This document shows positions 300 to 5,373 of a stretch of 64,000 nt of DNA, piece by piece. The position numbers were made by a program, and so were the translations under genes. The notes beneath the pieces were generated by a model. It worked only from the letters and a program-made list of their open reading frames with translations, had not been told where the DNA came from and did no database searches. Location of the stretch: NCBI GenBank assembly GCA_977016875.1, contig CDRNST010000382.1, forward strand, positions 1,550,001 through 1,614,000, given 5' to 3'. Source of the DNA: Pavona decussata. Its lineage: Eukaryota. Each line of letters starts with the position of its first letter. Position 1 is the first letter of the stretch.

Positions 300-3200
300 A
301 TGGGCAAAGATAAACGGGGAATAGTAAGGGGAAAGTGTACTCTTTGTCCCTGTGAAGAATTTGACACGGAGGGCAGTATTCTCTGTGAATACTGCGGCCA
401 TCCACCAATAAATCATGTTGTTCTGGACCACCATGGACAGGCATCTAAGAAGATGAAAAAAGGTAACCCTGAGCATGCAGCTGAGGAAGAGGATAGTTGT
501 GAGTACAACGTCACCGGGCAACACAATGATAGCACTGTGCCACAAAGCATCGACATTGACCCAGTCTCCACTTCCTCAATGCCTAACAACAGCGACAGCG
601 AAAAGCAAGATCATAACGAAATTATCGAAATTGACGCAATACCCAGCTCATCTTCTGATAGTGTCCACAGCGATAACCAAGAACACTCCAAACTCCTGGA
701 GCCAAAAACGTCTAATGATGAACAGCCTGGCCTGCCTAAATCGGATAATGAATTGAAAAAATTGCAGAAAATTGTTGACGAGACCGTGAGAAAACAGCTG
801 CATCAAAGCACGAGTGTCCAACTATCTGTCTGCCGGAAAAACAGTAGTGTTTCTGCTCATTGCAACGTATGCAACACTGAAATTGTCCTTCGCAGTATTG
901 GCAAAGCTCCATATTGTGTGCGACAGCATTTGGCAACCCAAATCCACAAGACCAATACCTTAATTGCTCATTCAAGAGAATCGAATGTTTCGCTAGAGCT
1001 TTCCGCATTGCACGCTCAAATTAATACCAAATATCCCAACGTTTTCATTGTCAAGAAAAGTAGTGCTTTCTGTCGGGCTTGTAAAACCGATATGTCTTTA
1101 CTCGGTCGAAATATCATGGGAAATTTAGCTCAGCACGTGAAAAGTTCCGGCCATGTACAAAATGCCGGGAAAGGAGACGCGACTTCTGCACGAGATATTG
1201 CCTCCTTCTTTGCACCCATCGCAAAGAAATCATCAAAATCAGCTGATACAAAAGACTGATCAGTTGGGAACAATGCTCCTGGAAAGCAGCTATGTCTAGG
1301 ATTCTACTCAAACAATTATATGTATAAGGTAAATAATGAAACAGTTTCAGTTGATCCTAAACTGCTAATTAATGATTTGAATCCTGGCAAGGACGACGAC
1401 AAAATTACCTGGTATCCGGAGCCTCACTTTAGTTTCGTGAAGAATAGCGAAGAATCGGAAGAAGTAATTAAAGGTACATTTAGAAGCGTCTCGTGTTCTA
1501 GATCAGCTGATGCTGGAACTTTTGTGAAAGAAATGTGCTCCTCCTGCTCTGCAATCCCAAATTTACCTTCTTTCAAGAAGCGTCTCCTACTAAGAAGCAA
1601 GAATTGTAACTCAGATGGGAAAAGGAACTTAGCATCAATCCGCAATGACTATTTGAACTCATCCGAGATGGTAGTCAAATTAGAAGAGCAAAAGGCAAAA
1701 TTAGAGCAACAGTCATCCCAGCTGTTCTTTGCAAAATCGAAAAACCTGCGCTTGCGTGTGCGAGTGCGAAACACACGAGAGAAGCTTGTGGAGTACGCTA
1801 GACGTGGGTCCATGAAGTCTATCTGCTACAAGCTTCAGAGGGGATCAGAAAAAGGTTTGTTGGATGACAAACAAACTTTGGTGGGAATTTTAGAATCTGT
1901 GTCACAGAATCTTCATGTTGATAAGAATGGAAAGCGGTACAAAGCACCACTGAAACTTTTCCTGGAGGTCATCATGCTATGGGGAGGCCCCAGACTAGCT
2001 ACGTTTGTTGCAATGAATATCTGTGGGCCAGAAGTCCATTCCATTTACAGATGGCGTAATCAGCACAGAGTGACGTTGGAGGGAGGCATTCAAGCGGGGA
2101 ACTTTAAAAAGCTTGGCGAAATTTACAGTGAGGCGATGACGAAACTTGGTCTTTCCTCCATCCCCGTGTTAGCAGCAGAGGATGAAACTGCGATCATCGC
2201 ACAAGTCACCTATAACGAAACAAACGACGTACTTCTTGGTTTTTGTGGAATGAATGGTGACAATCATCAATGCCTGGATCATTTTGCTGTTGACGTAGGT
2301 GACGGAGAGGAAGGGTATAACGCAATAATATCAGCGTTTCAAGAGTGTAAGATAGGCTCCTATGCAAGGGCAATAATGTTGAATCCACTTCATCCAAACC
2401 TACCTCGTCTAGCAATTTTGTGCATGCCCACCTGCAATAAGTTTGACACCACGTTTGTCCACAGGCAATGGCAGGAAGTACAGCGGGTCTACGAGCGAGA
2501 CCTAGAACCAGTTCTTGGACCCCTGGTTGGAAACAGTTCCGATGGTGACTCCAGAAGACGGAAGATTATGCTTCAACTTGCTGGGAGTAACGCGGCGGGT
2601 AACAGATTCCAACCGATTCCCACAAATCTTGGGTTTGTGTTTTCTTGTCGAAAGGAGGAAACAGAAGACGGTTTCTACAACATTCGGGACCTGTGTGATC
2701 AAGACTTCATCCACAACCACAAGAAGATGTTGAATCCCCTAGACCATGCCACAAGAGTTTTGATGTTAGGGGACTATATGGTTCACATGAATCATATTCA
2801 ACGTGTGTATGATGTTTTTCCTCCAACAGAGCATGGCCTTGGGGCAAGTGACATCAACCGGCGAGATCAGCAGAATTGGAGATCTGTGCAAAAGCTCTCT
2901 TTTCCAAAGGTGAGGGACTGTTTGGCGAGATTGATTGACGGTAGAGCACCCAACCAAAGACCGAATCCAATGCTGCTGGGAACTCAAGTTTATCTCCTCG
3001 TTGTCTGGTACTACGTGGAAATATTTTGTAGCAGCATGGCTTCTCTACATGCACGTATCAAGTACGCCGCCACTGTGACACATTTTCTGGCAATCTGGCA
3101 CAATTACGTTCATCGCCATCCTCGTCTTACCATTCGCACCAACTATATCACGAGAGAGACGTACATGGATATCTTGCTTTCCTGTCACTGTGCCGTACTT

Positions 3201-3813
3201 CTGATATGCTATATGAGAGACAATTTTCCTAACCAAGAATGCCGCCTTGACCTGACTGGCTCAGACGTGCTTGAAGATTTTTGGAGTAAAAATGGTCAAT
3301 GGGTGGGTAACCACCATAACTACAACTTCGGAGATCTAAGCAGGAACACCTCTCACATGATCCGTCTTGAGCAAATCAGAGTTGACCCTAACGCGCCAGA
3401 GTTCGCCAAACCTCATCCCAAGCAAGAGAGCATATGGGCGCAACAGTACCCAGTCGGTTTCGAGAAGGTTCGCTTGGATCAATACCCAGATCACGGAGAG
3501 GAGGTTCAAGCATGGAGGGAAGGTATATCGGTAGCCCAAGAGCTTGCGCGCTCAGTAGGGATGGCACCCACGAATGGTGAAGGTGATAATGGTGATGATG
3601 GTGGTGGTGGTGATAATGGTGGAGGTGACGATGATGACAGTGATGGTGGTTCTGATGACGGTACTGGTGATGATGTCAGAGTCTCCGCTGAAAACGTATG
3701 GTTCTATCGGCCCTTCCGGTACCCTGGAAACAAACTTCATGAGGGAAATGCCAGCGTATCTACCCAGAACAGTGACGAAGAAGAGGCTTGTAATGGAGGA
3801 CCGTGTATTTCAG
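300..3813 (+). CDS. Exon 1 of a P-element-superfamily (THAP9-like, THAP-less) transposase gene; contains in-frame TGA at 1257-1259 (codon 320, candidate selenocysteine/readthrough)
   Basis: ORFs 300..1259 and 1320..3821 are in the same frame, separated only by TGA; codons after it are open (SVGNNAPGKQLCLGFYSNNY-M). N-terminal part: CxxCxC...CxxCGHxxxxH motif and two U1/matrin-like C2H2 fingers. C-terminal part has P-like motifs in order: KRY...GP...IYRW HTH, AEDETA (D1), SSDGD (D2), DFIHNHKKMLN (D-x2-H), DQQNW, GSDVLEDFWS (E). Donor CAG|GTAAAT after 3813. Confidence 0.85.
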
Positions 3814-4148
3814 GTAAATAAATGGTGTAATTGAACATAGAGTGGTGCTCACTTGATCAGCTACTTGACTATTGAGATTAAACAAGGGTTCCTTACCATG
3901 GGTTTTGTGTTTACTAAGCACCTCAATTACCAAAGTGGTTTTTAATTTGGCTCTTGTCATTGGTCATTATGTCGGTTCTAGGTCATTTACATTTAACTAC
4001 AGTACAATTTTCAAACCATTGGTATAACAACCATATACTGCATACAAAATGTCTGTCAAAAGTCATCATTTTTACCAAATGTGGTGACCATATGCGTACG
4101 CATTTTTAAATAAAGAGCTATTTATAATTTGTAACTCCTCTGTTTCAG

Positions 4149-4368
4149 ACGAGCTTCAAGAATTTCAAAGTGCGGACCTTGGTGCAGATGACTCCAGCCA
4201 ACTCTCACTTGATCTACACTACATTGATGACAATGAGGGTACACCTCCAGCTGAAGGACGTCAAAAACGCAACCCACGTGTAAAGATACCAGGAAGAGGA
4301 GGGGAACATATCTATAAAAGCACTCTGGTCTCGATGCTGAATCAAGATCCTAACTTGTCCCACGACAG
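4149..4368 (+). CDS. Exon 2 of P-like transposase gene
   Basis: Acceptor tgtttcAG at 4148 and donor AG|GTAATC after 4368. Phase matches exon 1 (G+AC=Asp). Open frame DELQEFQ...KSTLVSMLNQDPNLSHD. Confidence 0.8.
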
Positions 4369-4479
4369 GTAATCAATTATTTTACTTAAAACTCATTCTA
4401 GTTTTGTTTTCATAGTTATCTCTACGTTTCTTTGCACGTCCTTATGTTTTGTCGTTGAGTTGTTGTTGTTTTCTTTCAG

Positions 4480-5068
4480 ACTACAACGAGTACGGCAGCG
4501 ACAAGAGTATGGCAGGGCGGAAAATGAAACTGCTCTTCAGAGTAACAGTGTTGCTCTGTTTGAGGACTATGCAGTACTTGACAGAAACAACAAGACGTTC
4601 AGAATTGGCAACCTTGTTCGCCTTATTTGTGCTGGAAACCGCAACGCGCCTATAGAATATCTTAGACCGGTGCCATACAATGACCCTAGGAAGCAGTCGA
4701 TCACCGCCTTTCTGCAACTTTATAGCCCTGTTCAGGGACCAGATGGTGTGGAGCAGCGTGGAGTCTACGAGCTGAAAACATCAGAGCTGTGTACGTTCCC
4801 CTTTGTCGATGTGCTTACCCATGTCAATGTTTCAGTCAGAGACGACAACTGCTACGAAATTCCATCAGAGGAACTTGCTTCAATAGAGGACGAGGCAGTT
4901 GGACTACTTGAGCCTCAACCAAGGCGAATTGGAAGGAGCAGAGCTTCCACTCAATTGTCCGACGAGGATGGGATAATTAGATTAACGGTGGAAGCAACCG
5001 AACAAGCTGAAAGTAATGGTCTTAGACGATCAAGTCGGACAAGAACAGCAGTGTTTTTTAATTCATAA
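4480..5068 (+). CDS. Exon 3 (terminal) of P-like transposase gene
   Basis: Polypyrimidine tract plus ttcAG at 4479. Phase matches (AG+A=Arg), giving LSHDRLQRVRQRQEY...AVFFNS*. Joined CDS is 3514+220+589=4323 nt = 1441 codons including the stop. Confidence 0.8.
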
Positions 5069-5295
5069 ATTCTTTTTCTTTGTACTCAAAGCTAAGATAC
5101 TTTGAACAAATGTCGGCTTACCATATATTTACATGGGTCGACTATATGAACTGGCACTTAGTGTTATGTCTAGAGGTTACAGTTATGAAACTTTTGTGAT
5201 TATCGTAATTTTTTTTAGATAAACCATAAGTAAACCCATGCTTTTCCTGGCACATTATACAGGAATTAAATTGATCATTGTTTTTTGACTTGCTA

Positions 5296-5373
5296 TTACA
5301 TAAATGTTATGACGGCATTTCACTAGACCAAGTAACCCCTTGGAGTTTTAATGCTTGATGCAATTTTGTGTAA
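5296..5373 (+). promoter_or_regulatory. SECIS-like element (type II) in the 3' UTR of the transposase gene
   Basis: AUGAC (5309-5313) opposite UGAU (5356-5359) forms the non-Watson-Crick quartet. Helix II is GGCAUU/AAUGCU plus ACU/AGU, with an 11-nt 5' strand. Unpaired AGA at 5325-5327. Apical mini-helix CCAAG/CUUGG. Helix I UUACAUAAA/UUUUGUGUAA. Folded by eye; the apical AGA deviates from canonical AAR. Confidence 0.7.

Follow-up and report, generated by a model that had tools for sequence, protein, structure and literature searches.

Can a transposase be made from a gene that carries an in-frame UGA, and, if so, by what means is the codon decoded? The question is raised by a gene at positions 300 to 5068 of a 64,000-nucleotide stretch of the Pavona decussata genome (assembly GCA_977016875.1, contig CDRNST010000382.1, positions 1,550,001 to 1,614,000 of the forward strand), hereafter the window. 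A reading made from the letters of the window only (the sequence-only reading) had proposed a DNA transposase recoded with selenocysteine (Sec), based on the single UGA and a hairpin resembling a selenocysteine insertion sequence (SECIS) in the 3′ untranslated region (UTR). Comparison with relatives makes it very probable that this UGA is a programmed recoding site rather than a mutation, because it is kept in every one of 14 animal lineages and SECIS-type hairpins are found in several of them. Regarding the decoder, we lean towards SECIS-directed selenocysteine as the best single explanation for the clade that contains the window copy.

All features of the gene lie on the forward strand. An open reading frame (ORF) beginning with the ATG at 300 runs for 319 codons (ORF1, 300–1256) up to the in-frame TGA at 1257–1259, which has the context GAC UGA UCA G. 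Downstream of the TGA, the same frame is open from 1260 to 3821 (ORF2). An exon model of 300–3813, 4149–4368 and 4480–5068, with GT-AG borders and all junctions in phase, yields a total of roughly 1440 codons that are otherwise open. ORF1 encodes a zinc-finger part that would be the short product if the ribosome stopped at the UGA. The remainder of exon 1 (1260–3813) contains a linker, a P-element-like transposase core and an acidic Gly/Asp-rich tail, and is followed by intron 1 (3814–4148, phase 1), exon 2 (4149–4368), intron 2 (4369–4479, phase 2) and exon 3 (4480–5068), which encodes a C-terminal domain and ends with a TAA at 5066–5068. The donor of intron 1 is at the same place (...C-x-SG/gtaa) in L052/P0003, and L051 has a shorter intron there. 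The junction of exons 2 and 3 rebuilds the sequence ...LSHD-R-LQRVRQRQEY (motif SHDR-L-x-RVRQRQEY). As this motif is uninterrupted in the intron-less relatives P0008 and P0010, the second splice is supported. DNA contigs from three runs of two samples reproduce positions 1–4299, including the TGA, with zero differences, which rules out an assembly error as its source; the runs span the introns and are therefore DNA. The claim of the sequence-only reading that the spliced gene is open except for one TGA is thus confirmed by frame, splice borders, phase and independent contigs.

Of the 14 animal lineages, every one has an in-frame TGA at the homologous linker; they are the window copy and L022/L025, L036/L037/L065, L051, L052, L053, L057, L058, L059, L060, L062, L063, L064 and L067. 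It is always TGA, never TAA or TAG, and it is in the frame of both ORFs. L051 is an 82% relative, L053 is from the brittle star Amphiura and L058 from the mussel Mytilus; core identity spans 26–82% over Amphiura, Mytilus and assemblies of cnidarian type, and among the lineages examined at the DNA level it goes down to 35%. Four further subfamilies of the Pavona genome have the TGA. The same genome contains paralogues distant from the window copy, termed B (contigs C215 and C65), C (C339 and C157) and E (C8), each with a single in-frame TGA at the homologous place. The codon is located 7–20 codons past a [DS]-I-x-S-F-F motif and 0–13 codons ahead of the Cys of a C-x-G-[FY] motif. Only in Amphiura does it align with this conserved Cys; elsewhere it lies 4–13 codons upstream, within a variable linker. 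The length of the linker differs among lineages by whole codons only, on both sides of the TGA, and the varying distances to the flanking motifs indicate that whole codons were gained and lost on each side.

The coding sequence on both sides of the TGA is under purifying selection. The ratio of nonsynonymous to synonymous substitution rates (dN/dS) is 0.17–0.35 upstream of the TGA, with a value of 0.17 for the last 70 codons of ORF1 (against L051), and downstream it is 0.21 over the first 80 codons and 0.145 for the core. Removal of the TGA by an intron, which the sequence-only reading had listed as a refutation of its proposal, was considered and rejected: no in-phase GT..AG pair could do so in seven lineages including the window. 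In the liverwort homologue (L061), the ORF is continuous, without a stop from one flanking motif to the other and without an aligned Cys, and in the Riccia-like database proteins P0081 and P0093, ORF1 is joined to the core. Land plants are not known to have Sec machinery. From the conservation, the constraint and the fused plant versions, we infer that the full-length fusion is the functional enzyme and that animals must decode the UGA.

Three database proteins differ from the genomic sequences at this site. P0048, a European Nucleotide Archive protein from a relative of the Amphiura lineage, carries Trp in the position of the TGA (...SNEWLDYTICHGY), and it ends at a conserved Trp further on. 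The Trp may reflect a true TGG or a different translation table, and a search with the P0048 junction matched only P0048 itself. The gene models P0071 of Desmophyllum pertusum and P0021 of Amphiura filiformis both sidestep the TGA, one with an invented intron that extends from the first zinc finger to C-x-G-F-Y and the other by starting after the TGA. The boundaries of these models are annotation artefacts of the recoding site.

ORF1 consists of an N-terminal Cys/His cluster (MGKDKRG...CEYCGH..H), an acidic and Ser-rich linker, two CxxC...H...H fingers and a C-terminal RDIASFF. Seven of its residues are invariant (C188, C191, H210, H216, C258, C261 and H279). In most lineages, the counterpart of RDIASFF (encoded at 1191–1211) is conserved as [KR]-D-I-[AS]-S-[FY]-F and precedes the UGA by a few residues. 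The motif resembles a PCNA-interacting protein (PIP) box placed at the C terminus of the short product and could bind PCNA; a PCNA-binding motif of this kind has reportedly been described for the pogo transposase.

The gene was searched as four separate pieces, exon by exon; 117 relatives are present in the database, with named sources including Amphiura, Mytilus, Desmophyllum, Nymphon and the liverwort Riccia. Pfam gave no match for the four window pieces and 20 relatives except a weak one to the Tnp_P_element helix-turn-helix (E = 0.061), and a profile search of PDB sequences came back empty. An AlphaFold2 model of the 851-residue core from a 62-sequence alignment has a mean predicted local distance difference test (pLDDT) score of 88.6 and a predicted template modelling (pTM) score of 0.77. 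Its best PDB matches in Foldseek are the Drosophila P element transposase structures 6pe2_A and 6p5a_A (E = 2e-10, TM score 0.67–0.69 by target), followed by RAG1, Transib and Hermes. The model thus indicates that the core folds like the P element transposase, with an RNase H fold and a large insertion domain. Core motifs are AEDET, SSDGDSRRRK, DQDxIHNxKK and GSDxxExFWS. The catalytic residues D308, D428/D430 and E672 (numbered in the piece starting at 1260) are nearly invariant and all present in the window copy, in agreement with the earlier description of its catalytic motifs as intact. The family of P-element-like DNA transposons to which the gene belongs is old and unannotated.

What, then, could decode the UGA? 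Past the stop codons of several relatives are sense-strand hairpins of SECIS type. In subfamily C (L055), the hairpin is at +233 nt after the stop and consists of an AUGA, a 10-bp helix, an AAAA and a GA, with a score of 31.9 bits against the Rfam SECIS_1 model. The hairpin of subfamily B (L054), at +370 nt, has a perfect helix of 10–11 bp and an AAA (22.2 bits). In Amphiura (L053), a match of 30.8 bits lies at +5.3 kb, with no ORF between it and the stop. The E-values of the three SECIS_1 matches are 1e-4, 0.14 and 0.034; these values are already multiplied by the 4227 Rfam families, and the matches are therefore significant for a single prior hypothesis. The B hairpin is retained in another species (L057), where the two changes in the stem both yield G-U pairs. 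In that locus, the hairpin-bearing segment of the 3′ UTR (8560–8980) is tandemly duplicated, and the upstream copy is degraded. Both B and C have an ATTAAA 16–77 nt past the hairpin.

When six hairpins with differing helix sequences are aligned in register, 86% of cells are paired compared with 29–42% in slid controls, and pairs are changed on both sides in nine of 11 cases. A model built from the six matched further hairpins, outside its training set, where they were expected in L065, L069 and L067; in L058–L064 it matched none. Scanning 230 kb of non-element sequence for the strict geometry returned no hairpin. No hairpin was detected in L058, L059, L060, L062 and L064, of which L062 and L064 were outside the Rfam scans. 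Large Rfam scans filter more strictly and missed the 31.9-bit match in L055 that a focused scan found, so the Rfam blank for L057–L060 is weak evidence. A whole-genome SECIS_1 scan scored 129 of 13,136 candidates and gives no background rate, and in a positive control neither model recovered a SECIS from the 1.5-kb flanks of three GPx genes. A second SECIS scanner based on constraint folding missed known positives and was discarded. The host genome contains tRNA-Sec (77.8 bits, three copies) as well as GPx genes with an in-frame TGA.

The window copy has its own hairpin of SECIS geometry at 5301–5366, with the AUGA at 5309–5312 and the GA at 5357–5358. Between them are a helix GGCAUU/AAUGCU, an internal loop, ACU/AGU pairs, an unpaired AGA and an apical mini-helix CCAAG/CUUGG, and a lower helix completes the structure, as first described. 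It has homologues in L051, in the degraded lineage D (L069) and in a 3′ fragment on contig C49 (L071); L051 retains UUAUGACGGCAUUU and AUGCUUGAUG within a UTR that is 68% identical. The window hairpin also aligns in register with the SECIS-scoring hairpins of B, C and Amphiura. Its folding energy is unexceptional (z = −0.76). The two caveats first attached to it, an AGA in place of AAR and a poly(A)-like ATTAAA at 5265–5270, are both real; the latter lies 39 nt upstream of the AUGA, is present in a second 3′ fragment on contig C2, and is not conserved in L051 or the C49 fragment. The C2 fragment (L002, 86% identical) is without exactly the hairpin stretch, corresponding to window positions 5281–5375, and the C49 fragment (82% identical) keeps it with AUCA instead of AUGA. 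The window hairpin is the weakest of the set and non-canonical, so that recoding in this copy may be poor or may not go beyond basal leakiness.

Lineages with and without a hairpin differ in the bases after the UGA and in the terminal stop. UGA-CUA(G) is a known readthrough context, and the bases after the UGA in the hairpin-less lineages are CUAG (L058, L059 and L062), CUAA (L064) or CAA-CUA (L060). In hairpin-bearing lineages they are UCA, CCA, CAA/CAG, CCU or UAU; the window copy has UGA-UCA, not the leaky UGA-C or UGA-CUAG type. There is no conserved structure directly after the TGA (window z = +0.5). In subfamily C (L036/L055, G000:C339), and in this lineage only, a local hairpin (CCUAAGCAGG..CUUGCUUAGG, z = −2.2) forms right after the UGA and recalls Sec redefinition elements. 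ORF2 ends with TAA in the six hairpin-bearing loci, as it does in L052 of clade 1, where the contig end truncates the 3′ UTR. Each of the four hairpin-less animal loci has TGA as its terminal stop, and the liverwort copy has TGA too. In a tree of the core, L064 is nested in the hairpin-bearing clade as a neighbor of Amphiura, and C falls outside that clade. Because of these two positions, the hairpin and terminal-stop states must have changed at least three times, each time together. A functional SECIS would be expected to go with a terminator other than UGA.

These observations suggest how the gene might work. The zinc-finger and catalytic ORFs, sharing one frame and split by a single strictly conserved UGA, would be joined at a programmed recoding site. 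Termination at the UGA would release a short zinc-finger protein ending just past the PIP-box-like motif, and decoding would give the full-length transposase, with the efficiency of recoding setting the ratio of the two. In the clade made up of A (the lineage of the window copy), B and the brittle star, and also in subfamily C, the decoder would most likely be the host Sec machinery acting through a SECIS-type kink-turn (K-turn) hairpin in the 3′ UTR; the other lineages, without the hairpin, appear to depend on a leaky UGA-CUA(G) context. Selenocysteine is favored because it alone explains the SECIS-scoring hairpins, their location ahead of a poly(A) signal, the use of UAA as terminator, and why a plant has lost the stop. 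A regulatory rather than catalytic role for the UGA, suggested by the sequence-only reading, fits the variable linker and the pairing of a short zinc-finger product with a long transposase. A wider picture, in which an ancient P-like family sets the ratio of short to full product via the UGA and its lineages swap between SECIS-directed Sec (with a UAA terminator) and near-cognate readthrough at CUAG (with a UGA terminator), is held tentatively, as somewhat less likely than not.

Several points weigh against selenocysteine. Every SECIS_1 score among the relatives is below the 35-bit Rfam cut-off, and the Amphiura match is separated from its stop by 5.3 kb and lies past a 2.3-kb tandem array (L053 11934–14248, with 5.4 copies of a 431-nt unit that are 97% alike). 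The refuting comparison set by the sequence-only reading, sister copies with a sense codon or TAA/TAG and no conserved hairpin, came out in favor of that reading. The proposal of Sec use is upheld in part: the relatives B, C and Amphiura score 22–32 bits and avoid UGA terminators, but the Rfam SECIS_1 model, whose use had been suggested as a check, does not match the 3′ region of the window even in a 131-nt scan. Nor does it match L069, the closest homologue of the window hairpin. The unpaired AGA of the window and the ACA of L051 contrast with AAA in L069 and L071, helix II of the window hairpin is interrupted by internal loops, and nearby poly(A)-like signals in the A lineage are only upstream of the hairpin. 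The covariation count is partly circular, the hairpins having been chosen by a pairing-based scan, and the terminal-stop correlation comprises few independent contrasts. The UGA is in a variable, low-complexity linker 0–13 codons from a conserved Cys, unlike the usual catalytic Sec. Finally, a search for RNA runs with the locus found none, the four runs that contain it all being DNA, and lineages without a hairpin manage without it, so that readthrough alone could suffice everywhere.

Such SECIS-independent readthrough, in which near-cognate tRNAs (Trp, Arg or Cys) decode the UGA at low frequency in all lineages, is the rival to be taken most seriously, although we regard it as less likely. 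The hairpins would then be kept for mRNA stability, 3′-end formation, binding of another K-turn protein or a DNA role at the transposon end. Of the three stops, UGA is the leakiest; the next base is C in eight of 13 contexts, and four lineages have UGA-CUAG or UGA-CUAA. The intact lineages L059, L060, L062 and L064 are without a detectable hairpin. The variable linker with no redox motif, the Trp of P0048 and the sub-threshold or absent SECIS_1 matches agree with readthrough as well. However, it leaves unexplained why sense-strand hairpins with AUGA, a 10–11 bp helix, AAA and GA recur after the stop in B, C and Amphiura, why hairpin-bearing lineages end in UAA and hairpin-less ones in UGA, and why the CUA context is restricted to the latter. 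It would also have to operate with no conserved stimulating structure after the UGA.

Both of these explanations assume that the UGA is decoded. If it were instead the true stop of ORF1, ORF2 would have to be expressed by reinitiation, internal initiation, or an alternative transcript or splice form. Many PCNA-binding proteins end shortly after their PIP box, and ORF1 likewise ends soon after its PIP-box-like motif; gene callers place Met codons early in ORF2, and some lineages have introns within ORF1. Yet the two ORFs share a frame in all 14 lineages despite many linker indels, where the chance is about one in three, and the stop is always TGA. Furthermore, the position of the first Met in ORF2 is not conserved, purifying selection acts on the codons directly after the TGA, the two ORFs are fused directly in the liverwort, and no in-phase intron can skip the TGA in the seven lineages inspected, making independent expression of ORF2 improbable. 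Least credible of all is a private nonsense mutation (e.g., CGA to TGA) in a decaying copy with a chance fold for a hairpin, which the sequence-only reading had raised as a caveat. The window copy is the only full-length member of its subfamily in the genome and the folding energy of its hairpin is unremarkable, as such a mutation would allow. However, the same TGA is at the same place in every animal lineage examined, the remaining codons are open, and the hairpin has homologues in L051, L069 and L071. We reject this possibility on the comparative conservation of the TGA.

The subfamily of the window copy, A, is represented in this genome by one full copy and the two 3′ fragments on C2 and C49. 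Subfamilies B and C have two 99% identical copies each (pairs of 5.3 kb and of at least 6.6 kb), and since these end sharply in different flanks, they were copied recently. Searches for inverted repeats gave no convincing terminal inverted repeats (TIRs) at the transposon ends. Two repeats adjoin or overlap the gene. A Gly/Asp-rich coding stretch at 3574–3675 (GDNGDDGGGGD...) matches dozens of tandem arrays genome-wide with 72–88% identity and represents a microsatellite-like coding repeat, not copies of the element. At 5401–6000, adjoining the 3′ region of the gene, read depth rises 100- to 1000-fold, revealing a high-copy repeat that ends in a poly-C/poly-G tract near 5871–5890 and is common to the fragments on C2 and C49. 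Copies of subfamily C likewise have a G/C run at the 3′ end. The high-copy repeat may be a non-autonomous relative or a separate short interspersed nuclear element (SINE) or miniature inverted-repeat transposable element (MITE).

Selenoprotein-encoding transposable elements have a precedent in the Naiad Penelope-like retroelements, described as the first of their kind with more expected (Craig, Yushenova, Rodriguez and Arkhipova 2021; PMC8557442). Naiad encodes a reverse transcriptase plus GIY-YIG and has three to four UGAs at conserved Cys positions of zinc fingers and catalytic motifs, together with a grade A SECIS 1–21 nt from the stop; only four families are known, from clams and spiders (PMC8557442). 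The elements have in common an ORF with an in-frame UGA, a SECIS or SECIS-like hairpin past the true stop, avoidance of a UGA terminator (the true stop of Naiad is UAA or UAG; PMC8557442), selenium-rich marine or arthropod animal hosts, and a state that arose more than once. They differ in that ours is a DNA transposon, whose single UGA occupies a variable linker between domains and is conserved across phyla; its SECIS-like hairpins, 230–680 nt past the stop, score under the Rfam cut-off, and part of the family has none. A literature search on eukaryotic DNA transposases turned up nothing relevant concerning selenocysteine or readthrough. The earlier statement that no selenoprotein transposase is known thus stands for DNA transposases but has to be qualified for transposable elements at large in view of Naiad.

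Other systems share parts of the arrangement. Similar to the Drosophila P element and THAP9, the core has an RNase H fold with an insertion domain and acidic DE(T/M) and DG motifs, and, as in the P element, one gene would give a short N-terminal product as well as the full-length transposase. Unlike in P and THAP9, there is no Pfam-level sequence match, and a Cys/His cluster with two CxxC-H-H fingers replaces the THAP domain. The short P repressor arises by intron retention, not by an in-frame stop, and the TIRs and target duplications of P were not found here. Bacterial IS1/IS3-type elements also make a DNA-binding short product (OrfA) and a fused transposase (OrfAB) from one mRNA, with recoding efficiency limiting transposition; they do so by −1 frameshifting between overlapping frames, whereas here a stop in a single frame would be redefined, in animals. 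The context in the hairpin-less lineages resembles that of metazoan UGA-CUAG readthrough genes and retroviral gag-pol, where a leaky UGA followed by C or CUAG allows a low-frequency C-terminal extension. The window copy, in contrast, has UGA-UCA and no conserved downstream stimulator, and its extension is a whole catalytic enzyme.

Gene callers split or mis-splice such elements. Given their mishandling of the TGA in the Desmophyllum and Amphiura models, annotation pipelines presumably undercount intact transposases in marine invertebrate genomes. If the proposed decoding is correct, this would be the first DNA transposase made via stop-codon redefinition in animals and the first case in which Sec insertion acts as a gate between two products rather than supplying a catalytic residue. 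The activity of the transposon would then be tied to selenium supply and the availability of Sec-tRNA. The elements would also be vehicles that spread SECIS elements through genomes, and their SECIS-bearing and SECIS-less relatives would constitute a natural series for following the evolution of UGA redefinition.

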